A stretch of DNA of 63,283 nt from Obrimoposthia wandeli (taxonomy: Eukaryota). The notes beneath the pieces are model-generated. The model was not told the DNA's origin, ran no database searches, and saw only the letters and a program-made list of their open reading frames with translations. Location of the stretch: the NCBI GenBank assembly GCA_977020255.1, contig CDROCS010002422.1, positions 372,001 to 435,283 on the forward strand, in the 5' to 3' direction. Below, piece by piece: positions 41,923 through 62,925 of this stretch (its first letter is position 1; each line of letters starts with the position of its first letter). The translations under genes and the position numbers were made by a program.

Positions 41923-43422
41923 TTATTCTAAATCTAACCAAATTGTTTTCACATCGGTGTACTGATCATGTGCTTGTAGCGAGTTATCGCGCCCACCAAA
42001 GCCAGATAACTTAAAGCCACCAAATGGAGTGCTGATATCGCCTTCACTAAAGCAGTTAACAGAAACCGTTCCCGCTTGTAACTGACGCGCAAATTTATGT
42101 GCTTTTTTCACGTTAGCGGTGTACAAAGAAGCTTGTAAGCCGTAACAAGTTTGATTGGCAAGCTCTAGTGCATGCTCATCAGATTCTGCTTCTATTAATG
42201 CGAAAACAGGGCCGAAAATTTCTTCGATAGCAATCGTCATATCAGCGGTTACGTTGTCGAACAAAGTCGGTGCGATGAATAAACCATCGCCAATAGTGAT
42301 AGCCTCGCCCCCTGCTAATAAAGTAGCGCCCTCTTTTTTGCCTATCTCGATATAACCCAGGATTTTATCGTACTGCACACGGCTAATGATAGAACCTAAC
42401 ATGTGTTCAGGGTTCATTGGATCACCGGTTTTCCAGTTTTCCATTTCTGCTAAAATCTTAACCGTTAGCTCAGCTTTAATATCTTTGTGGATAATAATGC
42501 GCGAGTTAGCCGTGCAGTTTTGCCCCATATTCCACAGCGCTGCGTTAACGATGTTTTCTGCTACTGAGTCTAAATTCTCGGCATCAGCTAATACGACACT
42601 TGGGCTTTTACCGCCACATTCAAGCACGATGCGTTTTAAGTTGCTGCGCGCTGAATACTCTAAGAAACGACGACCGGTCGTTGTTGATCCTGTGAAAGAA
42701 ACCACTTGTACATCTTCATGCATGCCCAAAGGTTCACCTACATCTGGGCCTAAACCTGGCAATACATTGAATACGCCTGCAGGAATACCCGCTTCAATAG
42801 CGAGTTCTGCAATGCGCAGTGTTGTCATGCTGGTTGTTTCAGCAGGCTTTACAATAACCGAGTTACCCGCCGCTAGTGCTGGGCCTAACTTCCAAGCCAC
42901 CATCATCAGCGGGAAGTTCCAAGGTAATACGCAGGCGACAACGCCTAAAGGTTCACGCACGATCATGCCTACAGCACCATCGCCCGATGGTGACAACTGA
43001 TCGTATAACTTATCTGTCGCCTCTGCATGCCATGCGATGCAACTTGCTGTTTCTGGAAGGTCAGTTAATACACATTCGTGAATCGGCTTACCGGCTTCTA
43101 ATGTTTCCATTACCGCCAATTCAAGTGCATTTTCGGTGATCAAAGTCGCAAGTTTCGCTATGGCTGTTTTGCGCTCACTTGGATGTAATTTTGACCAATC
43201 GCCTCTTTCGAAAACAGCTTTTGCATTGGCGACGGCAACATCAACATCTGCTTGTTTACACGCGGCAACATTGGCAAGCAACTCACCGGTAGCAGGGTTA
43301 ATACTTTGCATGGTTGCGCCATCAATCGCATCAACAAAAGCGCCGTTAATAAATGCCTGAACCGGTAGTTTTAGTTCTGAAGCAATTTTTTGGTATTCTT
43401 GAGTGGTGAGTAGCTCTGACAT
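41923..43422 (-). CDS. Aldehyde dehydrogenase (PuuC-like)
   Basis: PWNFP, FTGST, LECGGKSP, GQNCTA, EEIFGPV. Confidence 0.93.
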   Translation of the reverse strand: MSELLTTQEYQKIASELKLPVQAFINGAFVDAIDGATMQSINPATGELLANVAACKQADVDVAVANAKAVFERGDWSKLHPSERKTAIAKLATLITENALELAVMETLEAGKPIHECVLTDLPETASCIAWHAEATDKLYDQLSPSGDGAVGMIVREPLGVVACVLPWNFPLMMVAWKLGPALAAGNSVIVKPAETTSMTTLRIAELAIEAGIPAGVFNVLPGLGPDVGEPLGMHEDVQVVSFTGSTTTGRRFLEYSARSNLKRIVLECGGKSPSVVLADAENLDSVAENIVNAALWNMGQNCTANSRIIIHKDIKAELTVKILAEMENWKTGDPMNPEHMLGSIISRVQYDKILGYIEIGKKEGATLLAGGEAITIGDGLFIAPTLFDNVTADMTIAIEEIFGPVFALIEAESDEHALELANQTCYGLQASLYTANVKKAHKFARQLQAGTVSVNCFSEGDISTPFGGFKLSGFGGRDNSLQAHDQYTDVKTIWLDLE

Positions 43423-43671
43423 TTAATTCTCCAGAATTCTGTATTTTTTACAAACTTAACGGTACTTAATGTAGCAACAATTCAGCGCAAAAACATTATG
43501 ATATGCTGCGATTTTATTCAACATTAAGAGAGTAAATAGATAATTGTATAGATTGATATATCAATTAGGTATCTAGATTGATACACAAGTGAATAGATTA
43601 CATGTAACTCTATAAAAGGTCTCCACGCTTAATTAACGTAAAGACCTGTCGTATATTTAAGCAATTACGCG

Positions 43672-44574
43672 TTAAGCAGCCATAATTTTTTCTAGTTCGC
43701 TCGCCGCTTTTTCAATCACACCTTTTACATTGCCAGCCATCTCAGCTTCCATTTCCATCATCGGCAAACGCACTGGCCCACCATCAATACCTTGCAGCTT
43801 TGCACCGTACTTAACACACTGGATGAATTTGCCGCTTTGCTCTAAAAGCTCCATCACTGGCATCAACGTTGCCATGAATTTTTGGCCTTTTGCGAAATCT
43901 TTCTCGATTACACAAGCTTCATAGAACGCCACACATGCTTTAGGGAAAATATTTGCGCAAGCACACACCCAGCTTTGCGCGCCCCAGGCAAAAAACTCTA
44001 ACACTTGGTCTTCAGCACCAGCGCTTAATTGCACTTGTGGGTAATCAATGGTTAATTGATGAATGCGGTTCACATCACCACTTGATTCTTTAATCGCTAC
44101 TATATTCTTGCGATCAGCCACTTGATCCATAAAACTAGTCCCCATTTCAACGCCTGTGCGTCCAGGATAGTTGTAAAGGATAATCGCTAAATCTGCCGCT
44201 TCATCGATACGGATAACGTGCGCTGCTAATTCTGATTCATCAGGAAGTGAGTATGGTGGTGCTGCAACTAACATTGCACTCGCGCCCGCCGCTTTCGCCG
44301 CTGCTGCATAAGCGTAAGCTTCTGTGGCAACCATATCGTTAACACCGGCGATCCAAGGAACTCGCCCTGCGATGTATTCATTGGCAAAAGCAAACTGCTC
44401 TAAACGCTCAGTTTTTGACATGGTGTAAAATTCACCGGTAGAGCCGCCAACAATCAAGCCGTGCACGCCATTGTTGATTTGGTTATCAATTACCGCTTTC
44501 CAACCATTATAATCGATACTGCCATCAGCGCTAAAAGAGGTAATAATAGGTGTGTATATGCCTTGAAACTTCAT
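43672..44574 (-). CDS. DapA-family lyase/deaminase
   Basis: GSTGEF, LYNYPGRTG, Schiff-base AIKESSG. Confidence 0.9.
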   Translation of the reverse strand: MKFQGIYTPIITSFSADGSIDYNGWKAVIDNQINNGVHGLIVGGSTGEFYTMSKTERLEQFAFANEYIAGRVPWIAGVNDMVATEAYAYAAAAKAAGASAMLVAAPPYSLPDESELAAHVIRIDEAADLAIILYNYPGRTGVEMGTSFMDQVADRKNIVAIKESSGDVNRIHQLTIDYPQVQLSAGAEDQVLEFFAWGAQSWVCACANIFPKACVAFYEACVIEKDFAKGQKFMATLMPVMELLEQSGKFIQCVKYGAKLQGIDGGPVRLPMMEMEAEMAGNVKGVIEKAASELEKIMAA

Positions 44575-44661
44575 TGTCTATCCTCGTATTGCTCTCTTTT
44601 GCGATAAGAGAAGCTAAATTTTATACGTGTATCACGGGTTAATTGCAAAAACTATACTGCA

Positions 44662-44682
44662 TTGAATACAAATTGTATACTA
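44662..44682. promoter_or_regulatory. Tandem GntR-type operator-like sites
   Basis: TTGAATACAA and TTGTATACTA are each one mismatch from TTGTATACAA. They lie between the divergent dapA-like and gntR genes. Confidence 0.55.
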
Positions 44683-44819
44683 AATAAATATACGATTACA
44701 ATTGAGTTGAAAAAGAGTAGAATTGGCCGCTAATTTTTCTACATCTTGCGAGCGTACAGCACCATGAAAAATTACCGAGTATATGCAAGCAAAATATTAC
44801 TGATCAAAAGGGATTAGCT

Positions 44820-45533
44820 TTGAGTAACGCCACTGTCACAAAAGAAAAACGCACCCGCGGTGAGGGTGCTAATCGTATTTTTAACATTCTGCGTGAAGAA
44901 ATTTTATCGCTACATTTAAACCCAGGCCAGCCGGTAGACGAAGTGGGTTTAGCTGAACGTTTTGGTGTTTCAAGATCTCCTGTGCGCGAGGCATTAGTAC
45001 GTTTAGCTTCGCAAGGTTTAGTGCATACCCTACCTAATAAAAGTACTATTATTGCCCCACTCAATATCGAAGAATTCCCACAGTATATTGATGCCTTAGA
45101 TTTATTACAGCGCGCCACGCACCGTTTGGCCGCTAAGTTACGAACTGAAGCTGATTTAATCGAGATTGATGCATTGCAACAACAATTCACCCAAGCAGTA
45201 AACGATAGCAATGTAGTGGCAATGATTGAGCGCAATCAAGCATTACATATGGCGATAGCTAAAGCTTCGCGCAATAATTATTTAATGAAAAGTTATTCAA
45301 CTTTGTTAGATGAAGGGCGCCGCATTCTACGTTTATATTTTCGCTCGTATAACGATACGCTTCCCCCTGAGTTAGTTGTTGAGCACAATCATATTATCGA
45401 TGCCATTCGCGCAAAAGATGCTGACCTTGCCGAAAAACTCGCTCATGAGCATAGTATTGAAGTTAAAACACGCTTCCTTGCTTATTTATCAACTAGCCAT
45501 ACTTCTGGTATCGCTGTTGATGTAAGCCAGTAG
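44820..45533 (+). CDS. GntR/FadR-family regulator (FCD domain)
   Basis: LAERFGVSRSPVREAL, EHNHIIDAI. Confidence 0.92.
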   Translation: MSNATVTKEKRTRGEGANRIFNILREEILSLHLNPGQPVDEVGLAERFGVSRSPVREALVRLASQGLVHTLPNKSTIIAPLNIEEFPQYIDALDLLQRATHRLAAKLRTEADLIEIDALQQQFTQAVNDSNVVAMIERNQALHMAIAKASRNNYLMKSYSTLLDEGRRILRLYFRSYNDTLPPELVVEHNHIIDAIRAKDADLAEKLAHEHSIEVKTRFLAYLSTSHTSGIAVDVSQ

Positions 45534-45902
45534 CGCGCTGTTAATTCGTTGCCAGCACATAAATGCTGGTATCTGTGTTGCTCTAAAAACTCAATTGTAA
45601 TTTAGTTTATTACAGCTTATTAACCGCTCTTAGACTTAATAAATTACGCGTAAAACGACACTCCACCTAATGCTCAGCGAGAGTTATTTGGCCTAATCTA
45701 TTCTGCTATCTCATGCTTATTTAAAACGGCCTAAACCATCGCGCATTGAAATTTAAGCGCCCCCAGCAAATATTAAACTTACCTTTCAATAACATCTGTT
45801 TAGGCATTGTCTAAGAATACCCATTCACTTTATTTATTGATTGACTCTCACCAGCCTTAAGGCGTACATTTGCGAAAACAATGGACGTTTAGGGTACGAT
45901 AT

Positions 45903-47747
45903 ATGACGGCAACACTACTCTCTTTGCTGGCACTTTTTTCTAGTGGCTTCGTGATTATGTCAGCCCATGGTTTGATCAATATTTTGCTGCCGTCTAAACT
46001 TAGCCTTGAAAATGTCAGCGCCGATAATATTGGCTTAATCATGTCTATGTTTTCGGTAGGCCTACTGCTTGGCGGTATCTACACTCGCCGTCTGATTATT
46101 CACGTTGGCCATATCCGTGTCTATGCGGCCAGTGCTGCAATGGCCGCCATCAGCATTTTAATATGTTATCTATGGCTCAATGAGTGGTTATGGGCGGTAA
46201 TGCGAATTCTCATGGGCTTTTGTATTGCTTCCACTAACATCGTTGCAGACGGCTGGTTGAGTGAACGCGCCACCAGCGATACCCGAGCACGAATTTTGGC
46301 AACGAATCAAATAGTGCTTTTATCGGCAATGTTTCTCGGCTCTTTCATGATTAACCTAGCAGATATCAGCCACGCAACCTTGTATATCATGGCCGGCCTG
46401 TTGCTTTGCGGTGGCGTAGTGCCCATTGCCATGAGCAGCGCATCGGCTCCAGATATCGATGACGCTCCGTCAATGCCATTACGTAAATTGGTTAACACCT
46501 CACCCGTTGGCACTATGGCCGTTTTGATGTGCGGATTAATACTTGGCTCTTTGCTGAGCATGCTGGCCGTTTATGCGAAGGCAAAAGGCATCACCGGCTT
46601 TAACGTTTCACTTTTAGTCGGCGCTGCGATTATCGGCGGGGTTATTCTGCAATACCCTATTGGCTATCTCGCCGACCGCTATGAACGACGTAAGGTCATG
46701 CTTAATATCGTGCTGGTGTCGATGATCTGTACCGGGCTAATCCCCTTTGTTATCGATTTGGATTTATTCATTCCAGCACTCGTTTTAGTAGGCCTCAGTA
46801 GTGGTATCATTTCTAGTTTATATCCGCTGGGGGTGGCCGAAACATTTGACCGTTTACAACAAAACGAAATGGGCCGCGCTATCGGAGCGATGTTTATTAT
46901 CTACGCTAGTGGCGGCATTATTGGCCCTTACGCAGTTGGTCTAGTGATGCAGCACAGTGGAGTCAATTCTTTCTTCATGTTCATGGCCGCTATGCAGTGC
47001 CTGTTTGCCTTCTTTATCGTTTATCGCAGCCGAATACGTCAATCAATCCCAACCGATCAACAAGAAGCATTTGTCGCTCAAGGTGCAACGGGTTGGGTGA
47101 GTACTGAGCTTGACCCTCGTACTGAATATGTTGATAACACAGCTCTCAGTGCAGCGGCACAAACGGCGGTAGATATCGCGCTGGTCAATCCAGCATTAGC
47201 ATTAGAGATGGTCAGTTTGATAGCTAAGGCTTCACCTGATCAAGTGATTGAAGTAGCAGGTGCCTTAGCTGGCGTTGAGGGAATAGACGTTACTGAGCTA
47301 TACAAATGCCTTAACGAAATAGCTCCAGAAGATCACCAAGAATTAGTACAAACCATCATTACTGCCACGGCTGATTATTCTACCGAATTGGTCAGTGCTG
47401 TGTTTGATGAGGCTGAATCTGCCGATATTGCTGAATTAGCCACAGCGATGACGGAGGCTGCCCCTGAGGAAAGCTTGGAAATTATTGAAGCTGCCACAGA
47501 GGCAGTGCTGGAAGACAATCCTGAAATGGTGGTGGATATTGCTGAAACCTACCTCAACAGTATGACCGACAGTTGGGAAGATATGCGCTATGCAGATCGC
47601 CTCGCTGACGATGGTGAACAAACCATCACCGATATGGTGTCAATGATTGCTGAGAAAGCACCTGAGCAGGTAGCAGAAGTAACTGCCATCATCTCTGAAA
47701 CGGATTTTGACGCAGACATTGATACTGACAATAGCCATGAGAATTAA
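45903..47747 (+). CDS. MFS transporter (YcaD-like) with long acidic C-terminal tail
   Basis: 12 TM core, GYLADRYERR, then about 200 aa D/E-rich helical tail. Confidence 0.88.
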   Translation: MTATLLSLLALFSSGFVIMSAHGLINILLPSKLSLENVSADNIGLIMSMFSVGLLLGGIYTRRLIIHVGHIRVYAASAAMAAISILICYLWLNEWLWAVMRILMGFCIASTNIVADGWLSERATSDTRARILATNQIVLLSAMFLGSFMINLADISHATLYIMAGLLLCGGVVPIAMSSASAPDIDDAPSMPLRKLVNTSPVGTMAVLMCGLILGSLLSMLAVYAKAKGITGFNVSLLVGAAIIGGVILQYPIGYLADRYERRKVMLNIVLVSMICTGLIPFVIDLDLFIPALVLVGLSSGIISSLYPLGVAETFDRLQQNEMGRAIGAMFIIYASGGIIGPYAVGLVMQHSGVNSFFMFMAAMQCLFAFFIVYRSRIRQSIPTDQQEAFVAQGATGWVSTELDPRTEYVDNTALSAAAQTAVDIALVNPALALEMVSLIAKASPDQVIEVAGALAGVEGIDVTELYKCLNEIAPEDHQELVQTIITATADYSTELVSAVFDEAESADIAELATAMTEAAPEESLEIIEAATEAVLEDNPEMVVDIAETYLNSMTDSWEDMRYADRLADDGEQTITDMVSMIAEKAPEQVAEVTAIISETDFDADIDTDNSHEN

Positions 47748-47773
47748 GGGTTAAGTACTTTTTTATTAAAAGT

Positions 47774-47925
47774 CATTAGTGTCCGGTTTAATTTTTGTTG
47801 TTCTGTAACTCATTGATTTCACGTTAACCACAAGTATTATTTGGCTAAAAAAATCCAATTATCTATGCTAGAAAACCACAAATCAATGGGTTAGAGAGCT
47901 TACACTTTTTAACCGGACAGCAATG
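47774..47925. mobile_element. 152-bp MITE, copy 2 (inverted), with 9-bp target site duplication
   Basis: Reverse complement of 1924-2075 with about 13 substitutions and no indels. ATTAAAAGT is duplicated at 47765-47773 and 47926-47934. Confidence 0.9.
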
Positions 47926-48047
47926 ATTAAAAGTGTAAGTTAAGTTGCGTTACGCGAAATATATATTCTATTAGCTGATTTAGCATCCTATTGTGAATAT
48001 TTAAATCAGCCTGATATACCGCTTTAAAGACCTCAGTTCAAGACTGC

Positions 48048-49280
48048 TCAACTCGCCAATAATGCAGCGACCATTTTTGCAGTACTAGGCCCTTGCGTTA
48101 AACCTAAGTGCCCATGACCTAGTGCATAGATAATATTAGGGTTCGCTGCACTTCGCTCAATAATGGGCAGTGAATCGGGTGTAGAGGGACGATGACCCAT
48201 CCAGCGGTAATTTTCCTGCTGTTGCAATGTTGGAAATAGCTCACGGGCGATTTTATCTATCGCTGTAAAATGCTTGGCATTGGGTCGGCGTTTAACACCA
48301 CCGAACTCTGCCCATCCACCGATGCGTAAACCATGATCTATAGGGGTTGCCACTACGCCTCTGTCGCCAAACATGATGGCTCTAGCGACATTAATTTGCG
48401 GGTCTGTATAAGTTAAATTATAACCGCGCTCAGCCTCTAGCAGTTTTGGCGTGTTGAGCTGTTTAAGAAGCGGTTTTGACCACACACCTGCACTGAGTAC
48501 CACTTTATCAAAGCGACATTGTTGGCCGTTTTTGTAAACTAACTCAATACCTTGTGTCACACTGTTCATTTGCTGCTCAATGTTAAACTGCGTAATTTCT
48601 TCACAGATAAATTCGCCGCCATTAGCACAGCAAAAATCCACTAGCCCTGTGACTATTTTTTTCGGGTCACTCACCGTCATCCACTGCGGTAACAAATATC
48701 CACCAGCAAATATCTTAGCTAAATTGGGTTCTAAATCGTAAAGCTGCTCAGTGCTTAAACTTTGCGCTGTAAAACCATACTCAGCTCTTTTAGCGAATCC
48801 AACGGCGGCAGCAGCCAAACTTTTAGTGCTTTCGTAAAGATATAAAGCACCGTCGCGATTTAAATACTGTGCAAGGTTAGTACTCGCAAATAAATCTTCA
48901 ACGTCTTGGAACACATGAGCATTCATATTCCCCAGCTTTTTAATATTTTGCTGATGAATAGCATCTTGTGAATTTAATGCAAAACGCCATAACCAAGGGA
49001 TCAACATCGGCCACTGAGTTAAAGGTACTTTTAAGGGTGATTTTGGATCAACCAACATTCCGAGCGCCGCGGTGACTATGCCAGGTGTGGCCATTGGTAT
49101 AATTTCAGGCGCTGCTATATGCGCAGCATTACCTCTTGATGGCCCTGCCATACCGGGCATTGAGCGGTCTATAAGAGTAACTTTAGCGCCTTGTAATATC
49201 AATTGCGCCGCGCAGCAACTTCCCACTATACCGGCGCCTACTATGGCGATATGCTGACCTTGTAAATTTTTTTCATTCAT
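48048..49280 (-). CDS. FAD-dependent D-amino-acid dehydrogenase family
   Basis: IVGAGIVG, SRGNA, WMGHRPSTPDSLP, GHGHLGLT. Confidence 0.9.
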   Translation of the reverse strand: MNEKNLQGQHIAIVGAGIVGSCCAAQLILQGAKVTLIDRSMPGMAGPSRGNAAHIAAPEIIPMATPGIVTAALGMLVDPKSPLKVPLTQWPMLIPWLWRFALNSQDAIHQQNIKKLGNMNAHVFQDVEDLFASTNLAQYLNRDGALYLYESTKSLAAAAVGFAKRAEYGFTAQSLSTEQLYDLEPNLAKIFAGGYLLPQWMTVSDPKKIVTGLVDFCCANGGEFICEEITQFNIEQQMNSVTQGIELVYKNGQQCRFDKVVLSAGVWSKPLLKQLNTPKLLEAERGYNLTYTDPQINVARAIMFGDRGVVATPIDHGLRIGGWAEFGGVKRRPNAKHFTAIDKIARELFPTLQQQENYRWMGHRPSTPDSLPIIERSAANPNIIYALGHGHLGLTQGPSTAKMVAALLAS

Positions 49281-49316
49281 TGCTGTCAATCTCAATAACT
49301 GTAACCAAAACCAGAA

Positions 49317-50351
49317 TCAGCTCACTAAATCGTCAGCATCGCCCCAACAATCTGCAACGCTATACCCTTCTTGATAGGGATCTGTTGGATCGACCCCTAT
49401 TTGGTGAATACCGTGAATCCAACCACGGCCCGAAACTTTAGGTAATACAGCTACTTTACCAGCTACCTGCGTCGTACCCGCCACGCTCATATCGAAACGG
49501 CTACCAATAATCGAATATGCGCTGTAGGTATCACCAACTGCGACTTCACCGCGAGCATGCATCACTGCCATGCGAGCACTATTTCCAGTACCACAAGGAG
49601 AGCGATCTAGCCTACCTGGGGGTAAAACGGTAGCGCCTCGCAATTGATTTTCCGGCCCTTTATCAATTAGCATGGTATAAGCAATACCTTTTAACTGCGC
49701 GTTTTCCGGATGCGCAATATCATGTGTTTTATTAAGTTGGCGCTGCACTTCACAACCTATCTCAACTATTTTTTTAGCATTACCCGCTTCGATGCTAATA
49801 CCTAGTTGTGCGCAATCGACCAGAGCATAAAAGATACCTCCGAAGGCGATATCAACGGTTAGTGTGCCATATTTTTCGGTGACAACTTGTACATCTAAGC
49901 TATGTACAAAACTGGCATTCATATCCAGCTCAACTCTTTCACACTTGCCATCATTACACTGCGCTGTTGCCGTAACCAAACCTGCTGGCATATCAAAACG
50001 CACGATTGTCTGTGGCTCTTGCATGGGCAGAATCCCCGTTTCCAGTAGCACTGTTGTCACACAAATACAGTTCGAACCTGACATCGCATGTGCTTGATCA
50101 CCTTGTAATATGATAAAGCCTGCATCGGCATCAGGGCGTGTTGGTGGCAGTAGCAAATTAGTACTCATTTGTGCGTAACCGCGTGGCTCAAACACACAAA
50201 AGCGTCGAATGCTGTCATCAACTTCATTAATGTAGGTCATTTTATCTAACATCGTTTTGCCGGGGATATCTAATACACCTCCCGTGACAACACGACCCAC
50301 TTCACCTTCTGCATGGGCTTCAACTAAATTCAGTGTTTTTTTCCAGCGCAT
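49317..50351 (-). CDS. Proline racemase superfamily protein, Ser/Cys catalytic pair
   Basis: HAEGE, EPRG, AMSGSN (Ser at first site), DRSPCGTG (Cys at second site). Confidence 0.92.
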   Translation of the reverse strand: MRWKKTLNLVEAHAEGEVGRVVTGGVLDIPGKTMLDKMTYINEVDDSIRRFCVFEPRGYAQMSTNLLLPPTRPDADAGFIILQGDQAHAMSGSNCICVTTVLLETGILPMQEPQTIVRFDMPAGLVTATAQCNDGKCERVELDMNASFVHSLDVQVVTEKYGTLTVDIAFGGIFYALVDCAQLGISIEAGNAKKIVEIGCEVQRQLNKTHDIAHPENAQLKGIAYTMLIDKGPENQLRGATVLPPGRLDRSPCGTGNSARMAVMHARGEVAVGDTYSAYSIIGSRFDMSVAGTTQVAGKVAVLPKVSGRGWIHGIHQIGVDPTDPYQEGYSVADCWGDADDLVS

Positions 50352-50449
50352 GGATTTTCTCTCTTTAAATTCTATTTTGGGCACATTATCTTGCATGCTC
50401 TACAGCGTCAATCATTAAATTCACTCTTTAGTGCAGTAGTGAATACTTT

Positions 50450-51586: not shown

Positions 51587-51713
51587 CTTGTATGACAGCA
51601 ATGAAGTTTGTGCGGGCCTAAATATCATGCTTTGATAAAAAAACAGACAGTGAATACTGTCTGTTTGTAGCTAAGCTGTTTAAATAAGTTGTTTTTCACT
51701 TAACTGCTTATAA

Positions 51714-52016
51714 CTATTTTAAACTTGCGAAATATGCTGCTACGTCTTCAATTTGATCTTCTGCAATAACCATCGCCATAGGAGTCATGGTTGCATCTTT
51801 ACGCGTCCCATCTCTAAATGCTTTGATTTGCTTGATAAAATATCCTGCCTTTTGTCCTGCTAGATTTGGCCATAAATCATTATTACTCACACCTGCAACA
51901 CCATGGCAAGCAACACATAGTTGCGATGCAGCTTTACCTTTTTCAATATCTGCTGCAAACGAAACTTGGCTCATTGCTAGCACACACGCACTTAATACAA
52001 TTCTTTTTAATGTCAT
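51714..52016 (-). CDS. Monohaem class I cytochrome c (c553/c4-like)
   Basis: Signal peptide, CVACH, PNLAGQ, MTPMA. Confidence 0.93.
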   Translation of the reverse strand: MTLKRIVLSACVLAMSQVSFAADIEKGKAASQLCVACHGVAGVSNNDLWPNLAGQKAGYFIKQIKAFRDGTRKDATMTPMAMVIAEDQIEDVAAYFASLK

Positions 52017-52357: not shown

Positions 52358-55063
52358 CTACACTATATTTCGCGGCGCAAAAGAGAAGCTGCGATATTCG
52401 TGTTTGTACTTACTCTCACCAATTTTCTTGATTTTGGCGACGCCCATTTTAAAGTTATAATTACCTGAAATATTATCAACTACACGTGCGGTCAATGAAT
52501 TACTAGGCTGGCGCATGTCTAGCATATTTGCATAAAGCACCCCTACTTTTACCGCAGGAGTGACGATCGCAACCGCAGTCACCGCCGCTTTACTCAATTC
52601 AATATGACCTCGCTTGAGCAACTCACCAAACTGGAAGTTTTGGCTATCAATGCCTAGCAATGTATCTTTGAAAGCTGCGACTCTATCTGAGTACATCATC
52701 ACTTGATCACCGGATTCAATACCGCGCTTTTTAGCATCCTCTGGATGAATTTCTACCCAGTTTTCAGGCCAGCGTTGAGCGGTATAAGCACGACGTTCAA
52801 TATCATCAAAACCTGACTGCCAGATCTCATTGATACGTCCATTTGAGAACCAAAGTTCTTCCTCTTTAGGTGATAACCATTCATGAAAATCACTGAACAA
52901 ATTCCAAGGATGCTTTTGTAAATTAACTTTGCCGGTTTGTGAGTTAAAGTGCGTCAACTTCTTAGTCAACACATTCGCTCCCTGTGCTCCGTTTTCTAAT
53001 CCCATTTCTTTGAGTTTTTCTTTATTTTTAGCCAACTCAGTATCGTGCAAACGTTCAGTACCATGCAGTGTTTTCGTATCATAGTTATAAAAAACAGGTC
53101 CTTGGATACCGTTAGTGCCGAATTCGCGCATTTTTTGATGTAAGGTTTTCCCTTCAGCGTGAGCTGCAACTTTCACCATGTTGAAATCTTTACGACCCCC
53201 ACGACTAAAGCGTGCAGCTTCTTCTGCGACTTCGTTTGAATTTTGCCAATCAAACCCGTCATAGCCCATTTTTCTCGCTAGCTGGCTAATGATCCACCAA
53301 TCGGGTTTAGCGTCACCTGGTGCATCGTTAAACTTTTGATACAAACGTAATCGACGCTCTCCATTGGCGCGCATGAAATCCTCTTCACCCCAAGAGGCTG
53401 CAGGGAAAACTATATCAGCAAATTTAGCGCCAATAGGGTCACGCAAATAGATATCTTGATTGATGACTACCATGCCGCCCGAATCAGCACGCGCTTTGAG
53501 GGTATCGATTATTTCTTGCTTGTCGTAACTAAAAACTTGATGTGGATTGGCAGATGTTAGCTCCCAAAACTTTTTAAGTAGCCCCTGCGATCCAGACATT
53601 GACTGAATCCAAGTCGTGCCGATTACATGTGCAAAACGCGTGTGTCCAGAGTATGTCCAACGATCGGTGTCTAGCGCGCGACGACGACGCCCTGGCACTT
53701 TCTCCGGCGACTTATTACGCGGTAATTTCCCGCCTGATTGCCCGCCACGTTGATGCCCGCCTAAGCGTCCAACCACACGTCCCGGTCGTCCTCCTGCGCC
53801 AATAACTGTTGCTAACGAGCTAATTGCATTAGTATTACCAGTATTATTCGACCAGTAAAAACCTTTCTCAATGGCGATAGAGGCTTTCTTACGACTACCA
53901 TCTTCATTTGGCTTAGATAGCATTTGCGCTGCTTGATAAATTTTATCCGGATCAATTGCTGCCACTTTAGCGGCATTTTCCACTGAGTATTCAGGTTGTG
54001 CGAGTAACCATTTTTTGTAGTCTTCATAGCCGTCTGTTTGGAATTTCCCCCAAGTCGTACGCCACTGCCAAGGTGTGTTACGTGTTCCCTGACCAAACCC
54101 TGAGCTAGATTCCCATTTATTGTTAACCCATTCGTCAATCCACTCTTGATCCTGCCAATTGTTTTCCACAATCACACGTAAAATAGCGCCTAGCACTAGA
54201 TTATCGGATCCCGGGTTTACATCTAAATGCAAGCCACCGTGCTTCTTCATGTAAGCGATACCCGCTGTTTCACGAGGGTTAAGGATGATTGTTTTCATCC
54301 CTCGCTGAATGGCTGGCATCATAAACTGCGTAAAGAGAATGGTTTTGGTTTCATAAGGGTCTGTACCGCATAACATCAACACATCCGCTTTGCCCCAATC
54401 TTCGTAACTTGGGCCAAAGTTATCAAAACCTGCATCTCTAAAGCCTGGTGTAGAAGTTACATCAGAAGGCGTATCATGAAAGCTAAAGTTAGCGGTATTG
54501 ACATGCCTTAAAGCATATTTGGTAATCGCGTAGGTGTTTTCAATATATTGATAAGAGTAAGTTTTAACCCCATAAGCGTTCTCCCCATGTGTATCAATAA
54601 CATGGCGACCAACCGCCGCTGCAACTTCAATAGCGAGCTCCCAACTCACAGGCTGTAATGTGCCGCCAATACGCATTAATGGGCTGGTTAAGCGATCCCG
54701 GGTGCCCGTTGATGGATTGTAAACCTTTTGTGCGATCAACCCCCCTCTCATCGATGAATCACCATTTAAGTTAACCGCTTTGGTTTTCTTATCGGGAACA
54801 ATCACCACATTATAAGGCTGGCCTTCATGCATCACTACATTGTGCTGGGCAGGGGCCACCCACTCTTGTAATGCATAGGATGGAAAATCAATGCCAAAGG
54901 CATTTTGATCAGCTTTTATGCCACCGCTAGGCTTGTGCAACGGCCAGCGATAAACGTTGTAGCCGCAGGCAACGACACAATAATCACAAGCGGTGGTGAT
55001 TACCTCTGCATCTTTTGGTGGTAGTAATGAAGAATCTTCTGGTATGTAAAAATTAGTTGTCAT
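52358..55063 (-). CDS. idrA: Iodate reductase catalytic molybdopterin subunit (AioA-related IdrA clade)
   Basis: [3Fe-4S] motif CDYCVVAC plus SSMRGG, GRLGGHQ, NGRINEIWQS. It lacks the AioA HNRPAYNSE motif and is operonic with a Rieske and two peroxidase genes. Likely start is ATG 55063. Confidence 0.85.
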   Translation of the reverse strand: MTTNFYIPEDSSLLPPKDAEVITTACDYCVVACGYNVYRWPLHKPSGGIKADQNAFGIDFPSYALQEWVAPAQHNVVMHEGQPYNVVIVPDKKTKAVNLNGDSSMRGGLIAQKVYNPSTGTRDRLTSPLMRIGGTLQPVSWELAIEVAAAVGRHVIDTHGENAYGVKTYSYQYIENTYAITKYALRHVNTANFSFHDTPSDVTSTPGFRDAGFDNFGPSYEDWGKADVLMLCGTDPYETKTILFTQFMMPAIQRGMKTIILNPRETAGIAYMKKHGGLHLDVNPGSDNLVLGAILRVIVENNWQDQEWIDEWVNNKWESSSGFGQGTRNTPWQWRTTWGKFQTDGYEDYKKWLLAQPEYSVENAAKVAAIDPDKIYQAAQMLSKPNEDGSRKKASIAIEKGFYWSNNTGNTNAISSLATVIGAGGRPGRVVGRLGGHQRGGQSGGKLPRNKSPEKVPGRRRRALDTDRWTYSGHTRFAHVIGTTWIQSMSGSQGLLKKFWELTSANPHQVFSYDKQEIIDTLKARADSGGMVVINQDIYLRDPIGAKFADIVFPAASWGEEDFMRANGERRLRLYQKFNDAPGDAKPDWWIISQLARKMGYDGFDWQNSNEVAEEAARFSRGGRKDFNMVKVAAHAEGKTLHQKMREFGTNGIQGPVFYNYDTKTLHGTERLHDTELAKNKEKLKEMGLENGAQGANVLTKKLTHFNSQTGKVNLQKHPWNLFSDFHEWLSPKEEELWFSNGRINEIWQSGFDDIERRAYTAQRWPENWVEIHPEDAKKRGIESGDQVMMYSDRVAAFKDTLLGIDSQNFQFGELLKRGHIELSKAAVTAVAIVTPAVKVGVLYANMLDMRQPSNSLTARVVDNISGNYNFKMGVAKIKKIGESKYKHEYRSFSFAPRNIV

Positions 55064-55073
55064 GTTATTCCCC

Positions 55074-55652
55074 TTACCCAGCCAGTTTGTTATCGGTGCG
55101 GCCAAACAACAGACCCATGATGCCTACGGCATAAATATCGTCACCTTCTACTTCCAATAGTACTTGCGGTAGACTTTCATAGGCTTGACCCGAAACGATA
55201 ATACCGTGGCGGCGCATATCAAAAGTCGATAGATGAAAAGGGCATTGCCCTAACACTCGATGCTCATCGACTACTTTGTATTGCCCGATTAAAGGGCCTC
55301 CTTGATGCGTACATATGTAGCTAAATGACACTATATCTTGGCCTTGGCCAATACCGCCACCGCACTTGACACCGGTTTTAACGATCATCGCCTGTGAGTT
55401 AGGCCCCTTGTCTGGGTATTGAAAGTCAAAAGGCTGATTTTCTTTCAACTGACTCATTTGAGCAATTTTGATACGCGGATAAGCTGTCACTTGCGCTTTC
55501 ATTTCTTTTGCTTGTACAGTGCCTGGAAATAAATTCAGTGAAATAACACTAGTAGCTGCGGCCGTTGCACTTGAGTAAAGCAGAAATTTGCGACGCGAGA
55601 TCATGCAATCGGTATGCTCTTTCGCTGTTTGTTGGCTTCTATCCTTTTTCAT
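55074..55652 (-). CDS. idrB: Rieske [2Fe-2S] small subunit with Tat signal
   Basis: SRRKFL twin-arginine signal, CTHQG and CPFH Rieske ligands. Confidence 0.87.
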   Translation of the reverse strand: MKKDRSQQTAKEHTDCMISRRKFLLYSSATAAATSVISLNLFPGTVQAKEMKAQVTAYPRIKIAQMSQLKENQPFDFQYPDKGPNSQAMIVKTGVKCGGGIGQGQDIVSFSYICTHQGGPLIGQYKVVDEHRVLGQCPFHLSTFDMRRHGIIVSGQAYESLPQVLLEVEGDDIYAVGIMGLLFGRTDNKLAG

Positions 55653-56848
55653 TTTTTTGCCTCCTTCAGCTCTTCTATACTAAATAGCGGTGCGTATTCA
55701 GGAAGAGCGGGAATTTCTTCGGTGATTTTTTCACCTGAAAAGCTTTCAACGAATGCCAACAAATCTTTCTTCTCACCGGCACTTAAATTTAATGGTTTTA
55801 TTAAGTCTGATTTAGTTTTGATAAAAGCACTAGATCGGCCATCTTTAGCAATACCACCACGGTTATAAAAATCAATAACATCCGCTAACGTTTTTATACC
55901 TCCGTTGTGCATATAAGGTGCTGTATGCTTGGTGTAACGTATCGACGGGGTGCGAAACATACCTTTTTGCTGAGAAAGCTTGCTTCTAAAATAAATCCCC
56001 GGATCAGCTTTGGTGTTGCGATACATTTCCTCTGTAGAGCCTTTTGCGTAGAGTTCATAGCGAAAAGTAATTTGTGCTAGAGCATCTTCTTCCCAACGTT
56101 TGAGTGGCGGCACACCAATGTTATAGTGCTTTTGATCACTTGCTAATGCACCGTTGTGACATTGCACACAACCAGCTTTTCCCTCAAACAGTGTTTTGCC
56201 AGCCACTTGGCTCTTAGTTAGCGCACTCTTATCACCGGCTAAATACTTGTCTATGGGTGTATCTCTTTGCACTAAAGTACGCTCATAGGCGGCGATAGCT
56301 TTCCAAGCATTTGAGATTTTTGGCCAATTATCACCAAATACCTTTTTAAAACGCTGTCGATAATCTGGAATTAACGCTAAGCGTGCTTCCATGATGTCGT
56401 CTTCGCCATTACCTGCAACACCACCTTTGGCAGCGCTTTTTGCCTGCCCTTCTAGTGATTTTGATGAGCCTGCCCAAAATAACTTTCCATAGTAGGCCGA
56501 GTTGATAATAGTTTGCGAGTTACGCCAGTGAATTGTACCTGGGTATCCCAATGAAATATTATCTGGCCAATCCCATCCAAGTGCTGGCACATGGCAACTG
56601 CCACAACTGGTAGAGCCATCGCCACCTAAGCGGCCGTCAAAAAACAGGATTTTTCCCAATTCGATTTTTGCAGCGCTCATTGGGTTATCCAAGGGGATAG
56701 GCACTTCACCTAAAGGGGCTAATGGCGGTACTTCTTGTGCACTAGCTTGTAGAGGCAGCGCAAGTGCAGTGAGTGTAAATGTAACAAGAGCACAAAGTTT
56801 ATTTGCCGAAATGAACTTTTGCTTTAACGGTTGTAATTGCATTGTCAT
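55649..56848 (-). CDS. idrP1: Dihaem cytochrome c peroxidase/MauG-family protein
   Basis: CGSCH and CVQCH, FRTPSIR, APYMHNG. The P1/P2 labels are assigned by position. Confidence 0.82.
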   Translation of the reverse strand: MTMQLQPLKQKFISANKLCALVTFTLTALALPLQASAQEVPPLAPLGEVPIPLDNPMSAAKIELGKILFFDGRLGGDGSTSCGSCHVPALGWDWPDNISLGYPGTIHWRNSQTIINSAYYGKLFWAGSSKSLEGQAKSAAKGGVAGNGEDDIMEARLALIPDYRQRFKKVFGDNWPKISNAWKAIAAYERTLVQRDTPIDKYLAGDKSALTKSQVAGKTLFEGKAGCVQCHNGALASDQKHYNIGVPPLKRWEEDALAQITFRYELYAKGSTEEMYRNTKADPGIYFRSKLSQQKGMFRTPSIRYTKHTAPYMHNGGIKTLADVIDFYNRGGIAKDGRSSAFIKTKSDLIKPLNLSAGEKKDLLAFVESFSGEKITEEIPALPEYAPLFSIEELKEAKK

Positions 56849-56856
56849 TTCCTCGA

Positions 56857-57960
56857 CTAGTTTTTAACGTCTAACCAATTGTTGATAACTTGATAACTAT
56901 AATCATTTTTATCCCAGATATAAGTATCAGAAATCAGCGCATCACCTGAAAGCCCTTGCAGATAGCTCACCAAATCTTTTTGCTCTATCGCCGATAGCTT
57001 CAACGGCTTTAATAAGGCTGATCTGTTTTTATCTTCACCGCCGCCACCGTTATAAAAAGCGACTACTTCAGGTAAAGTATTGATCATGCCGTTATGCATG
57101 TAAGGTGCTGTATATTTCAATTCTCGCAAGCTCGGTGTCATGAACTTTCCAATATCAGTTCCATCCGCTTTATGTGTTTGTACATGAGCCCCAACATCAC
57201 GCTTTAGCGCCATATAGTTCTCATTACCCATAAACATATTGAACGCGATAAAAGTTTGATGATTGGCTGGTTTTAGGAAAATATCAAAGTTTTCAGCTAC
57301 GCCTGTGTTATGCGCTTTACCATCTGAAAATAACGGACCTGTATGACATTGAGTACAGTTCCCCTTACCTTTAAATAGTGCCTGACCACGCTTAGCAGAA
57401 GCACTCAACGTATTAGTATCTACCGGAGCGTTTTTAGAGGTTAAAGTCTTAAGGAACTCAGGTATTGCCTTGCGCACGCCACCGTTAGAGGGTTCACCAT
57501 AACCTGCTGCTTTAAACATAGTTACGTAAACAGGGTCTTGCTTTAAACGCTCTTGCATCAAACGCATATCCATATTCATACTGTAATCTTCAGTAATCAT
57601 AGAACGTGTGACATCATTTAAATTAGTTCCGATGCGGCCATCATGAAACCAAGATTTTTTGTAAATGGTATTGATTAATGAAGGTGCGTTTCGAAAATGC
57701 CCATTACCCGGATAACCCGGCGATAAAGCAGTAGAGCTGGCAAAGCCGTTTTTAGGCTCGTGACAACTCGCGCAGCTGATTGCGGTATCTCCTGACAAAC
57801 GAGTATCAAAAAACAACCGTTTGCCAAGTGCTGCTTTTTTTGCGTCTATTTTAACAACTGCTAGCGTATCCAGCGCAATCGCATTATTGGATAGAAAAAA
57901 ACAGCTGCTAAATAGCGCTGCTAACACTACTTTCTTTCTATTTTTGAGCCTAATGTCCAT
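56857..57960 (-). CDS. idrP2: Dihaem cytochrome c peroxidase/MauG-family protein
   Basis: CASCH and CTQCH, FMTPSLR, APYMHNG. GGAG precedes ATG 57960. Confidence 0.82.
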   Translation of the reverse strand: MDIRLKNRKKVVLAALFSSCFFLSNNAIALDTLAVVKIDAKKAALGKRLFFDTRLSGDTAISCASCHEPKNGFASSTALSPGYPGNGHFRNAPSLINTIYKKSWFHDGRIGTNLNDVTRSMITEDYSMNMDMRLMQERLKQDPVYVTMFKAAGYGEPSNGGVRKAIPEFLKTLTSKNAPVDTNTLSASAKRGQALFKGKGNCTQCHTGPLFSDGKAHNTGVAENFDIFLKPANHQTFIAFNMFMGNENYMALKRDVGAHVQTHKADGTDIGKFMTPSLRELKYTAPYMHNGMINTLPEVVAFYNGGGGEDKNRSALLKPLKLSAIEQKDLVSYLQGLSGDALISDTYIWDKNDYSYQVINNWLDVKN

Positions 57961-58461
57961 TTGTTGTCTCCACATTGGCTGATTTTATTGTTAGTACGTA
58001 CAAGTAATTTCGCCATCTTAACTAGCTTTATTTGTCGAGGCTGTACCACTAAGCTAGAGTCGTACACAAATCATTGAACATGCTACTAATCACGACAAGT
58101 GGAAATTATTTATACTGCTTCGCTCGCTCACATTTATTTTTGATCTTGTTACAAACAGCTTAGGGACTTAGAGATGGAATATAACTGTGCGGGACACACA
58201 AACAACGAATAAACCCCTACTGACTACTTGCCTATTTTAGATTAACGCGAATGAATTAGTATTATCAATTTCTCAATTGAGGTTCGTTGATATAGGTCAA
58301 TACGACAATGGGTAAATACTCGTTACTATTAATTATGTTCATAATTAATTGCGAAACTAGGTAATTGATAGCATTACTTAAAGCATCATATTGACGGCTA
58401 TTACTGACACAAATTCGCAAAGTAATAATAATAATATGCACAAGTGCTGGAGAGTATAACC

Positions 58462-60981
58462 ATGTCGCAAGCTTTGAAAACATCCTATTCAGAGACCCTT
58501 AATCAGCTTCTCATCTCTGACAATGAAGCCCAGAGTTGTTACGCTGCCCGGGCTATAGGTAGTATTTTACCCAACATCATTATTGGCAACAGCCACGCTC
58601 TTCAAGGACCCGAAGCCACTAAAACGGTGGAGAGTTTAATTGAATGCCTTCATCATCAAGACGTAGATGTGGTGATAGATGCTATTGATGCTTTAGGAAT
58701 GTTGCAGGCTAAACAGTCTATTGACATTTTACTTGATGCTGTAAATTTACATCCAGAAGGCGATGTGCGTGTCAGTGCAATTAGAGCTCTTGCCAATATG
58801 GTTGATGACAATTTACTAGAGCACTTTATACCTTGGGCAAAAGGAGAATTCGAACATCGCCAAACAGACACTTTGTGGAACGATGATTGGGACGTGCAAC
58901 TAATAGCCATTGAAACTTTTGGTAAACACCGTTTCCAAGGTGCTGTTGAAGTATTAAAAACGCTCTTACAGGAAAATAACTTAGACATGGAAGGGCAAGT
59001 TTTAAAAGCACTGACGCTTATAGGTGGCGAAGGGCTATTATACATTATCTCTCTTATTGAAGGCACAAAAAGTGAACCCTCTTTAATTGAACAACGCATT
59101 GCACGACGCGCTGCAACAGCCTTGGGTTTTGCTCATTGTAAACAGAGCATCACTGTGCTTACCCAAGCACTCAAGACAAATAATCCAAACCTTCGTGCTA
59201 GCGCTGTTACTGCATTAGGCAAGCGTCAAGCGCAGCAAAGCGCCATTGATATGTTAGAGCTACTTGATGATGTGGACAGTCAAGTAGTGACTGCAACCAT
59301 TACTGCATTAACAAGCATGCAACACCTTTTAAAAGAGCAGTTCGAGCTGTATGTTTCCAGTGAATATCTCTTATCGCAATTACCTAAACTCAATACTAGC
59401 GGACGTAATTTTGTCTATCAGCTACTCACTATAATGGCCGATGTAATTACTCTCGATCAAGCTCAAAAAGAGCAATTACACCAAGCTTTAGCTAGTGAAA
59501 ATCTAGATGAACAAATATATGTTTGCCAACTACTCAGTGCTATTTTGGATGATACTGCAGCCCCTGTGATCATGCAGCACCTCACTGAAAACGCAAATAA
59601 CACGCCTAATTCGCGCGCCACTCAAGCTATGTTACTTAGCTTAGGGAAACTGGCCAGTAATGATACGCGAACGCTATGTTGCTTAAATACCTTACTTGAA
59701 CTTCCTTCTTCATCACTACGTTTAGGCCTGATCCAAACGCTGGTGAGTATCGCTCAAAAACCTGCACTACAATCTGAGTTTAGCGCTGACACTCTGATTT
59801 TTGATTATCTATTAAAATCCACCGTTATCGACAACGCAGCCATTGAGAACCCAGAGCTTGAAGATAAGCCAGAAGATGATGAAAACAGCCCACTTATTCC
59901 AATACAAGCAATTGACCTAAACGGGGATAACGAGGCGTTTCGTTCTGCACCGCCAAGCTTGAGTGAAGAAGATAAATTACGCGCAATACTGGCAAGTGTA
60001 AGTGACGAGTATCCGCCAGCTGAAACAGTAACTGACAAAGCAATTGAAGAGATCAATTTTAAAGATACAGTAGTTGTTTCTACCTTAGACTCGATACAAC
60101 GCGAGACTATCAATGCTTTTGTTAGCCCTAAAGCAGAAAGTGCTGATGAAGTAGCGGCGCCACATATTCGCGAAATGGTTGAGCAATTGCCACAAAACGA
60201 ACAACAGTTTGCACAAATAGTGAATGATCATTTAGATAGTGGCGAAAGAGTCAAATTGAGCCGTAAAAAGATAGCCAAAATGCCGACTTATTCCAACAAA
60301 GTATTGGCACTGAAAGCCCTGACGGAATACCCAACTGAACACGTAGTAGATACTTTACTAGCACAGTTCTTATTTGATGATATTGAAGTACAAATTGAAG
60401 CGGTCTCATCACTAGCGATCATTGCTCGACAGCAGCCACAGTTACAGGCATTAAAAAAATGCTTGGGGCCTTTATGCACTTTATTGATGTCTGGAAATGA
60501 TCATTTACGCTTAATGTGCGCTCGAGCAATAGGTGCATTAGGGCACCGCACCGCATTACCTATACTATTAGAAGCACTCGCGGATACGGATAGTAATGTG
60601 CGTATCCAAGTGATAGATTCTCTGCACCAATACCTAGCTATTAATCAGCAAAGTCATTCTATATCTAAGAGCTTCGAAAAAATCGTTCCCCATGTCTTTG
60701 CTTGCTTACAAGATGATACAACTGGAGTGGTGATAAGGGCTTTAGCATTCTTTGCAGAGACTCATCACTATTTGCAAGATGCTGACAAAGAAGAAGTTAT
60801 TACAGCAATCATAACGGTTGGCTGTGCCAAAGATGATTATTTAGTAGCAGCTGCCAATAGTCTTGCTAATATTAATCGCCAAAGTGCTGGACAGCAGCTC
60901 TTTCAATTATTAAATAGCGCGCAAGAAAGTGAACAGCGTATCCCACTCTTAAAAATATTAACAATCGTGTTAGCTAATTGA
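58462..60981 (+). CDS. Large HEAT/PBS-lyase repeat protein
   Basis: Repeated units such as VVIDAIDALG, VRVSAIRALA, LRASAVTALG, LRLMCARAIGALG, VRIQVIDSL, with an acidic central linker. Confidence 0.85.
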   Translation: MSQALKTSYSETLNQLLISDNEAQSCYAARAIGSILPNIIIGNSHALQGPEATKTVESLIECLHHQDVDVVIDAIDALGMLQAKQSIDILLDAVNLHPEGDVRVSAIRALANMVDDNLLEHFIPWAKGEFEHRQTDTLWNDDWDVQLIAIETFGKHRFQGAVEVLKTLLQENNLDMEGQVLKALTLIGGEGLLYIISLIEGTKSEPSLIEQRIARRAATALGFAHCKQSITVLTQALKTNNPNLRASAVTALGKRQAQQSAIDMLELLDDVDSQVVTATITALTSMQHLLKEQFELYVSSEYLLSQLPKLNTSGRNFVYQLLTIMADVITLDQAQKEQLHQALASENLDEQIYVCQLLSAILDDTAAPVIMQHLTENANNTPNSRATQAMLLSLGKLASNDTRTLCCLNTLLELPSSSLRLGLIQTLVSIAQKPALQSEFSADTLIFDYLLKSTVIDNAAIENPELEDKPEDDENSPLIPIQAIDLNGDNEAFRSAPPSLSEEDKLRAILASVSDEYPPAETVTDKAIEEINFKDTVVVSTLDSIQRETINAFVSPKAESADEVAAPHIREMVEQLPQNEQQFAQIVNDHLDSGERVKLSRKKIAKMPTYSNKVLALKALTEYPTEHVVDTLLAQFLFDDIEVQIEAVSSLAIIARQQPQLQALKKCLGPLCTLLMSGNDHLRLMCARAIGALGHRTALPILLEALADTDSNVRIQVIDSLHQYLAINQQSHSISKSFEKIVPHVFACLQDDTTGVVIRALAFFAETHHYLQDADKEEVITAIITVGCAKDDYLVAAANSLANINRQSAGQQLFQLLNSAQESEQRIPLLKILTIVLAN

Positions 60982-62411: not shown

Positions 62412-62544
62412 AGCTTGGCAATGACCTACGTATCCCTAGGGGAGACCCCACACTACCATCGGCGAAAATCGTTTCACTTCTAAGTGCCACGGCGGATAGA
62501 GTGACGGGATTGCGTAAAACACAGCGCTATAATTAACAGAGCTT
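62412..62544 (-). rRNA. rrf: 5S rRNA-like copy 1 (divergent 5' domain)
   Basis: Minus strand contains AGAAGTGAAACG, CGCCGATGGTAGTGTGGGGTCTCCCC, GTAGGTCATTGCCAAGC. Confidence 0.7.
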
Positions 62545-62818: not shown

Positions 62819-62925
62819 AGCTTGCAATGACCTACTTCTCATGGGAGACCTTCACACTACCATCAAAAGCAATCGCTTCATTTCTGAGTTCGAGCGGATC
62901 AGGTATCCAATTAAGTTGCCAAACA
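62819..62925 (-). rRNA. rrf: 5S rRNA-like copy 3 (canonical layout, many small deletions)
   Basis: TGTTTGGC...ACCTGATCC...GAACTCAGAA...GATGGTAGTGTG...GTAGGTCATTGC. Confidence 0.65.

Follow-up and report, generated by a model that had tools for sequence, protein, structure and literature searches.

Does a molybdoenzyme gene cluster that annotation models assign to arsenite oxidation in fact encode an iodate reductase (Idr)? The question is raised by positions 52358-57960 of a 63,283-nt stretch of DNA, hereafter the window, which comes from contig CDROCS010002422.1 (positions 372,001 to 435,283, forward strand) of the assembly GCA_977020255.1, deposited under the name of Obrimoposthia wandeli. 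An earlier, sequence-only reading of the window took the four genes found there for a complete idrP2-idrP1-idrB-idrA cluster. The reduction of iodate to iodide shapes marine iodine chemistry and the sea-to-air iodine flux, and idrA serves as its gene marker. Idr clusters, known since 2020-2021, are widespread; the window provides a further carrier, which comes from a family not listed in the searchable literature. Our analysis indicates that the cluster is likely to be a periplasmic Idr-type iodate reductase module. Its catalytic subunit belongs to the second of the two deep subclades spanned by the idrA marker, isolate-level proof of function being available for subclade I only. This split, and the linkage of a HEAT-repeat gene to idr, are the parts of the work that a specialist might find useful.

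Organization of the idr Operon

The minus-strand segment 51641-57960 is a compact unit where, according to the open reading frame (ORF) listing, idrP2, idrP1, idrB and idrA are all co-directional and intact. The outer gene idrP2 (56857-57960, minus strand) encodes a periplasmic dihaem cytochrome c peroxidase-like protein of 367 aa with a Sec-type signal and two CXXCH motifs (PF03150, CCP_MauG, E = 1.3e-36); its start was placed at ATG 57960 because of the better Shine-Dalgarno site, an alternative upstream ATG at 57975 giving 372 aa. Adjoining idrB is idrP1 (55649-56848, minus strand), the gene of a second dihaem peroxidase-like protein (399 aa; PF03150, E = 2.6e-41) bearing a Sec signal and the motifs CGSCH and CVQCH. 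The idrB gene (55074-55652, minus strand) specifies a Rieske [2Fe-2S] small subunit of 192 aa (TIGR02694, 114.4 bits; PF00355), whose twin-arginine motif SRRKFL predicts export by the twin-arginine translocation (Tat) pathway and which carries the Rieske ligand boxes CTH and CPFH. The catalytic subunit is encoded by idrA (52358-55063, minus strand) and is a molybdopterin protein of the bis-(pyranopterin guanine dinucleotide) (bis-PGD) type, 901 aa long and devoid of a signal peptide. In the Pfam and NCBIfam searches it comprised an N-terminal [3Fe-4S] domain (PF18465, Rieske_3) followed by PF00384 (Molybdopterin) and PF01568 (Molydop_binding), with a CDYCVVAC motif. The idrA ORF opens at TTG 55105; since the homologues are 898-902 aa in length, the true start is taken to be ATG 55063.

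The genes idrP2 and idrP1 are separated by 8 nt, idrP1 and idrB overlap by 4 nt (ATGA), and 10 nt lie between idrB and idrA, with Shine-Dalgarno-like sites preceding idrP1, idrB and idrA. The ORF listing, the domains and these junctions thus bear out the claim of a four-gene operon with tight or overlapping junctions. The GC content gave no sign of a recent acquisition of the cluster, and a scan for sigma-70 promoters gave a result that did not exceed that of shuffled sequences.

The IdrA Protein of the Window Belongs to One of Two Deep Subclades

The phylogenetic position of the catalytic subunit was examined in an IQ-TREE tree of 67 proteins, which included the named IdrA-like proteins, 50%-identity representatives from an exhaustive profile search, references and distant outgroups. 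IdrA of Pseudomonas sp. SCT, the plasmid gene of Azonexus hydrophilus NCP973 and four large subunits of arsenite oxidase (AioA of NT-26, Thermus HB8, Hydrogenophaga and Acidiphilium) served as references; ArxA was not among them. The AioA clade was supported by a Shimodaira-Hasegawa-like approximate likelihood ratio (SH-aLRT) of 100, its sister side by 99, and the IdrA clade within this sister side by 96. On the sister side, two basal proteins that keep the AioA motifs came first, then a few intermediates with GGHQRG, and then the IdrA clade. The latter was divided into two deep subclades, both with a support of 100. The Pseudomonas SCT and Azonexus NCP973 proteins fall in subclade I and the window protein in subclade II, along with those of Endozoicomonas OPT23, Amphritea, Colwellia, Vibrio, Moritella, Marinobacter, Thiotrichaceae, Sedimenticola, Ruegeria, Stappiaceae and SAR324. 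The window IdrA was 47% identical to the Pseudomonas SCT protein, 49% to that of Azonexus and 27% to NT-26 AioA. Its position inside the IdrA clade, and not among the AioA proteins, leaves the assignment made from the sequence alone standing. In a comparison with solved structures, none of the 26 PDB sequences that matched at E <= 1e-10 was an Arr (respiratory arsenate reductase) chain, and AioA, Fdh and Nap ranked above any Arr.

Some genomes bear more than one idrA. Sedimenticola hydrogenitrophicus (P0112, P0544) has two genes, one from each subclade, and in each of two SAR324 genomes (G005 and G421) there are two copies that fall on the side of subclade II.

Active-Site Motifs and Second-Sphere Residues

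A residue-by-residue comparison with the solved NT-26 AioA (4aay) confirmed that the AioA motifs HNRPAYNSE and GGHQEG are replaced in the window protein by HDTPSDVTS and GGHQRG, just as had been noticed in the first reading. We then compared the second-sphere residues at NT-26 positions 169, 199, 200, 201, 207, 413, 447, 451 and 453 (PMC10448176). All eight AioA sequences compared have D, H, N, R, E, K, R, H and E at these positions; subclade I has S, H, D, K, D, K, R, H and R (with Cys at the last position in Azonexus), and subclade II, the window included, has S, H, D, T, S, K, R, H and R. In the numbering of the window IdrA these are S170, H196, D197, T198, S204, K400, R433, H437 and R439. 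The window protein therefore matches subclade I at seven of the nine positions and differs from AioA at five of the nine. Both subclades are devoid of the two acidic funnel residues of AioA (NT-26 D169 and E453) and have Ser at 169 and Arg at 453. Judging from the alignment, the exchange of D169 for Ser, E453 for Arg and E207 for Ser relative to AioA would suit an anionic substrate.

In the validated enzymes of Pseudomonas SCT and Azonexus, the first motif reads HDKCSATND. Since the two subclades differ at positions 201 and 207, HDTPSDVTS should be regarded as a signature of subclade II and not as a general signature of IdrA. The second motif also has its exceptions. The plasmid gene of A. hydrophilus NCP973 (L003:5983-8661), a validated iodate respirer, encodes GGHQCG, with GGHQRG in all other IdrA compared, so that Arg at NT-26 position 453 may not be essential, unless the record contains an error. 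Two AioA-like intermediates between AioA and IdrA (P0292 at L089 and P0293 at L090) bear GGHQRG and have no adjacent peroxidases, thus indicating that GGHQRG alone does not define Idr. One of these two genes adjoins genes for a multicopper oxidase and cupredoxins. The contig of P0291 was too short to be included in this comparison.

Conservation of the Gene Order

A scan of the GTDB species genomes revealed at least 302 genomes encoding relatives of the window protein; the counts out of 80 loci given here and below were obtained with the best 80 of these at least 302, which are 67-82% identical to it. The full P2-P1-B-A order was found in 71 of the 80 subclade II loci, the remaining nine being cut by contig ends. 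The same order was present in five subclade I loci, where the orthology of P1 and P2 was kept: IdrP2 of the window is 45-48% identical to the outer peroxidase of the subclade I clusters, and IdrP1 is 53-56% identical to the idrB-adjacent peroxidase of the Azonexus and Rhodobacteraceae subclade I loci. No peroxidase genes were seen in the AioA loci examined.

The subclade I systems of SCT, Azonexus NCP973 and Denitromonas IR-12 thus resemble the window cluster in their four genes, in the order and domains of these, in the [3Fe-4S] motif and in the Tat-Rieske partner, and their IdrA, which forms the sister clade in the tree, shares with the window protein the second-sphere Ser, His, Asp, Lys, Arg, His and Arg. 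In Azonexus, a small cytochrome c gene follows idrA just as in the window, whereas the sensor kinase, the sigma-54 regulator and moaA that lie beside the Azonexus cluster have no counterparts in the window. The iodate reduction islands predicted for Endozoicomonas sp. OPT23, Moritella, Vibrio, Photobacterium and Marinobacter (Reyes-Umana et al. 2021, PMC8692401) belong to subclade II, with 74-83% IdrA identity to the window. They have the same HDTPSDVTS and GGHQRG motifs and the same divergent HEAT-repeat gene upstream (in L009-L018), and those of Moritella and V. marinisediminis also share the trailing cytochrome c gene. The window differs from them in the host family, which is Oceanospirillaceae-type, and in the flanks, where it has hydroxyproline catabolism genes and an EamA gene.

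Iodate, Arsenite or Another Substrate

The Idr function has been established for SCT, IR-12, DN11, TC-10 and NCP973 (PMC8692401, PMC10149662, PMC13455634). In addition, three marine alphaproteobacteria reduce iodate under oxygen limitation, and in one of them, Roseovarius azorensis, the active band was shown to contain IdrA (PMC11445184). For the quantitative PCR primers of R. azorensis idrA, the best paired sites, with a spacing of exactly 112 bp, were those in three genes from Rhodobacteraceae. These genes share 74-75% identity with a subclade I protein and 48-49% with that of the window; no subclade II gene examined had a paired site. Because the primer pairs match subclade I genes only, the IdrA of R. 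azorensis most probably belongs to subclade I. For subclade II, the only functional support is the heterologous expression reported in 2026, where synthesised idrABP1P2 genes of the "new clade" from alphaproteobacterial and SAR324 metagenome-assembled genomes (MAGs) of oxygen-minimum zones raised the iodate reduction in E. coli (PMC13455634). We found 14 IdrA homologues in 12 of 88 genomes of the SAR324 phylum. Their identity to the window protein was 64-71% in all 14 cases, with no value in the 47-51% range, which places them on the subclade II side; judging from these homologues, the SAR324 cluster expressed in that work probably belongs to subclade II as well. According to the literature, the abundance of idrA tracks iodide-rich oxygen-minimum zones.

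Several observations weigh against an iodate reductase in the window. Every iodate-reducing isolate that could be placed belongs to subclade I (SCT and Azonexus, and R. azorensis via the primers), and the identity of the window IdrA to the validated proteins is no more than 47-49%. Two second-sphere residues, at NT-26 positions 201 (Thr vs. Lys) and 207 (Ser vs. Asp), also set it apart from them, as they do subclade II throughout. Finally, the heterologous assay in E. coli had a background iodate reduction of about 28% (PMC13455634).

A rival view is that the enzymes of subclade II, that of the window included, act mainly on another substrate, e.g., bromate, chlorate, selenate, or some other oxyanion or peroxide-linked compound, iodate reduction being a property of subclade I or a side activity. 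The depth of the split at 47-49% identity speaks for this view, and so do the systematic K/T and D/S differences at the two second-sphere positions, the presence of the HEAT-repeat partner gene with subclade II only (among the loci examined), the assignment of every placeable iodate-reducing isolate to subclade I, and the genomes that keep one copy per subclade, such as S. hydrogenitrophicus, which hint at non-redundant roles. Nevertheless, we regard it as quite unlikely: the four-gene architecture with both peroxidases is identical in the two subclades, seven of the nine second-sphere residues are held in common, the Glu-to-Arg switch included, the expressed SAR324 and alphaproteobacterial clusters are reported to reduce iodate, with all the SAR324 homologues that we found being on the subclade II side, and idrA follows the iodide-rich waters. 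A further idea, possible but rather doubtful, is that subclade II, with Thr and Ser for Lys and Asp in its substrate funnel, is functionally distinct, having for example a high affinity for the sub-micromolar iodate of seawater or preferring another halogen oxyanion; in this case the HEAT-repeat protein would be required as a maturation or regulatory factor.

A genuine arsenite oxidase AioAB, oxidizing As(III) with cytochrome c as the acceptor, is what the annotation models would predict. Both subunits exceed the cut-offs of the NCBIfam equivalogs (390.7 bits vs. 359.05 for TIGR02693 and 114.4 vs. 95.65 for TIGR02694), the best matches among the solved structures are AioA, and a small cytochrome c gene lies downstream as in the aioBA-cytC operon of NT-26. 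Indeed, AioAB (4aay from NT-26 and 1g8k from Alcaligenes faecalis) has the same fold family, the same subunit pair and the same wiring of [3Fe-4S], Rieske cluster and Mo-bis-PGD, and H199, K413, R447 and H451 are kept in the window protein. However, D169, N200, R201, E207 and E453, which are invariant in the eight AioA sequences, are all replaced (D169S, N200D, R201T, E207S, E453R), and the window IdrA, just over a quarter of whose residues are those of NT-26 AioA, stands outside the AioA clade with strong support. The two peroxidase genes have no counterpart in the AioA loci examined, and aioR and aioS of NT-26 and arsC of Acidiphilium gave no tblastn match anywhere in the 63-kb window, which also counts against arsenite oxidation. 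We therefore consider this explanation highly improbable. The similarity in wiring would be accompanied by a reversed direction of the electron flow in the window IdrAB.

The expectation that automated pipelines would call the cluster an arsenite oxidase proved correct. The names under which the public homologues appear are arsenite oxidase, arsenate reductase (azurin) or molybdopterin oxidoreductase, and since both subunits score above the arsenite oxidase cut-offs, the mislabelling is systematic: the curated models still place the whole IdrA clade under arsenite oxidase. As to iodate reduction, the tree, the Idr four-gene synteny and the absence of aioRS, arsC and moaA from the window uphold the identification of idrP2-idrP1-idrB-idrA as encoding a probable iodate reductase. 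The further claim that the host respires iodate needs one more step of inference than was assumed, since the validated enzymes lie in the sister subclade, at 47-49% identity; the sequence is compatible both with growth by iodate respiration and with a mere reduction of iodate when oxygen is limiting.

The subclade with isolate-level proof is the rarer one in the marine sample that we analyzed. Rhodobacteraceae carry both: among 401 genomes there were 21 carriers, 4-5 with subclade I and about 16 with subclade II. Subclade II appears as the dominant form in marine genomes, and its residue signature, along with the linked HEAT-repeat gene and the enriched FNR-type sites described below, offers concrete targets for experiments.

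A HEAT-Repeat Gene and an FNR-Type Box Upstream of idrP2

Divergently from idrP2, the window bears a gene for a HEAT-repeat protein (58444-60981, plus strand) of about 820-845 aa, the start codon being uncertain, with no signal peptide (PF13646, HEAT_2, E = 2.8e-42). A homologue of this gene adjoins the idr cluster in 51 of the 80 subclade II loci (L009-L088). In gammaproteobacteria it is upstream and divergent, as in the window, whereas in alphaproteobacteria it is directly downstream and co-directional; HEAT_2 was detected in 36 of 64 first downstream ORFs. Four carrier genomes (G001-G004) encode one or two HEAT_2 proteins each, one of which is always beside idr. No such gene was found within about 8 kb of the five subclade I clusters. 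Taken together, the data suggest that the HEAT-repeat gene is an idr-linked accessory gene. Its product showed no informative family beyond HEAT/PBS-lyase-like repeats, and no Cys/His metal motif was visible in the alignment. The text of PMC8692401 does not mention this gene.

The intergenic region between idrP2 and the HEAT-repeat gene contains an FNR/CRP-type palindrome, TTGATATAGGTCAA (58287-58300, no strand assigned), with one mismatch. Of 67 subclade II loci, 20 have an FNR-type box with no more than one mismatch in the 450 nt that precede idrP2, as compared with 1.9 +/- 1.4 (maximum 6) in 200 dinucleotide shuffles; as the loci are related, this excess is an upper bound on the independent support. 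A perfect box was found at a similar distance in L009. The genome of a congener of the host (G678, see below) encodes NapA and a cbb3 oxidase (ccoN), and NarG was not found in it, which fits a micro-oxic lifestyle with periplasmic electron acceptors. The box upstream of the operon, together with NapA and the cbb3 oxidase of the congener, suggests that the cluster may be used under oxygen limitation.

Proposed Pathway of Iodate Reduction

By homology with AioAB and with the models for Idr, IdrA would fold in the cytoplasm around Mo-bis-PGD and the [3Fe-4S] cluster and be exported by means of the Tat signal of IdrB. Electrons would pass from the quinol pool via cytochrome bc1 to a soluble cytochrome c, and further to the Rieske cluster of IdrB, to [3Fe-4S] and to Mo, so that the enzyme would operate, by analogy, as AioAB run in reverse. 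Iodate (IO3-) would be reduced at Mo to HIO and then to I-, while IdrP1 and IdrP2 might remove H2O2, other oxidants or reactive iodine by-products.

The soluble carrier is probably the product of the gene at 51714-52016 (minus strand), a monohaem class I cytochrome c of 100 aa with a Sec signal and a CVACH motif (PF00034), located 341 nt downstream of idrA. No terminator-like site was found between the two genes, which makes the cytochrome c gene the last one of the transcription unit; it is followed by an intrinsic-terminator-like hairpin (51641-51666, minus strand) of 11 pairs with a T run, the only strong one. A cytochrome c gene occupies the same position in the 95% relative described below, in Moritella, in Vibrio marinisediminis and in Azonexus, but follows idrA in only 5 of 78 other loci. 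The match of the window protein to cytochrome c552 encoded downstream of aioA in NT-26 is weak (33% over 48 aa). By analogy, the downstream cytochrome c is a candidate electron donor to IdrB.

Host of the Cluster and Its Genomic Surroundings

The source assembly (1.35 Gb, 6912 contigs) contains dozens of bacterial molybdoenzyme genes on many contigs, thus indicating that it is mixed or of a holobiont type. Sequencing runs containing the window DNA were found in a single study, probably that of the source sample, and no RNA run was among them. The best matches of GlpK (96% identity) and IdrA (95%) from the window are proteins of Oceanospirillaceae MAGs, and these matches, along with a family search, point to an uncultured Oceanospirillaceae-type marine gammaproteobacterium as the host. 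The 95% relative, which is of metagenome origin, has the same neighbourhood, comprising the HEAT-repeat gene, idrP2P1BA, the cytochrome c gene, the EamA gene and the hydroxyproline genes. In the MAG G678, IdrA is 99% identical to the window protein, and the 13 kb of DNA around the gene show an identity of about 85-89%, so that this genome represents a congener and not the species of the host. Among the 190 species genomes of the GTDB family to which the 82% relative belongs, 17, including G678, encode an IdrA. Oceanospirillaceae are not named as idr carriers in the published carrier lists or in the literature covered by a full-text search. The suggestion of a previously unreported host thus holds for the searchable literature but not for the public genomes, where the cluster is present in the congener with the 99%-identical IdrA and in 16 further species genomes of the family.

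In one member of the family (G515:C1:954705-957404), idrA lies in three fragments that differ in frame or ORF and is apparently decayed; a fragment from Aliamphritea spongicola among the homologues may be the same gene. The assembly from which the window comes contains a second cluster (C3952:216082-221775, L002), made up of idrP1, idrB, idrA and a cytochrome c gene. Its IdrA is 82% identical to that of the window, and the cluster is nearly identical to that of Moritella dasanensis, which implies at least two idr-carrying bacteria in the sample.

The operon is flanked at 41923-50396 by a hydroxyproline/D-amino-acid catabolic set, which also flanks idr in the 95% relative and includes a proline-racemase-family epimerase, a D-amino-acid oxidase (DAO)-type oxidase, a dihydrodipicolinate synthase (DHDPS)-family enzyme, an aldehyde dehydrogenase, a LysR regulator and a major facilitator superfamily (MFS) protein. 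Nothing in the window reached any Rfam gathering score; two 5S-like units (62413-62540 and 62819-62923, minus strand) scored 28.2 and 24 bits with the 5S_rRNA model, below its gathering score of 38. An element of about 155 nt, with the terminal inverted repeats GTGTCCGGTT...AACCGGACAG and a long hairpin fold, occurs in the window at 47773-47925 and 1924-2076, the two copies being 91.5% identical. More than 40 copies of it were found in the congener G678, and it looks like a miniature inverted-repeat transposable element (MITE) or a dispersed repeat of the repetitive extragenic palindrome (REP) type.

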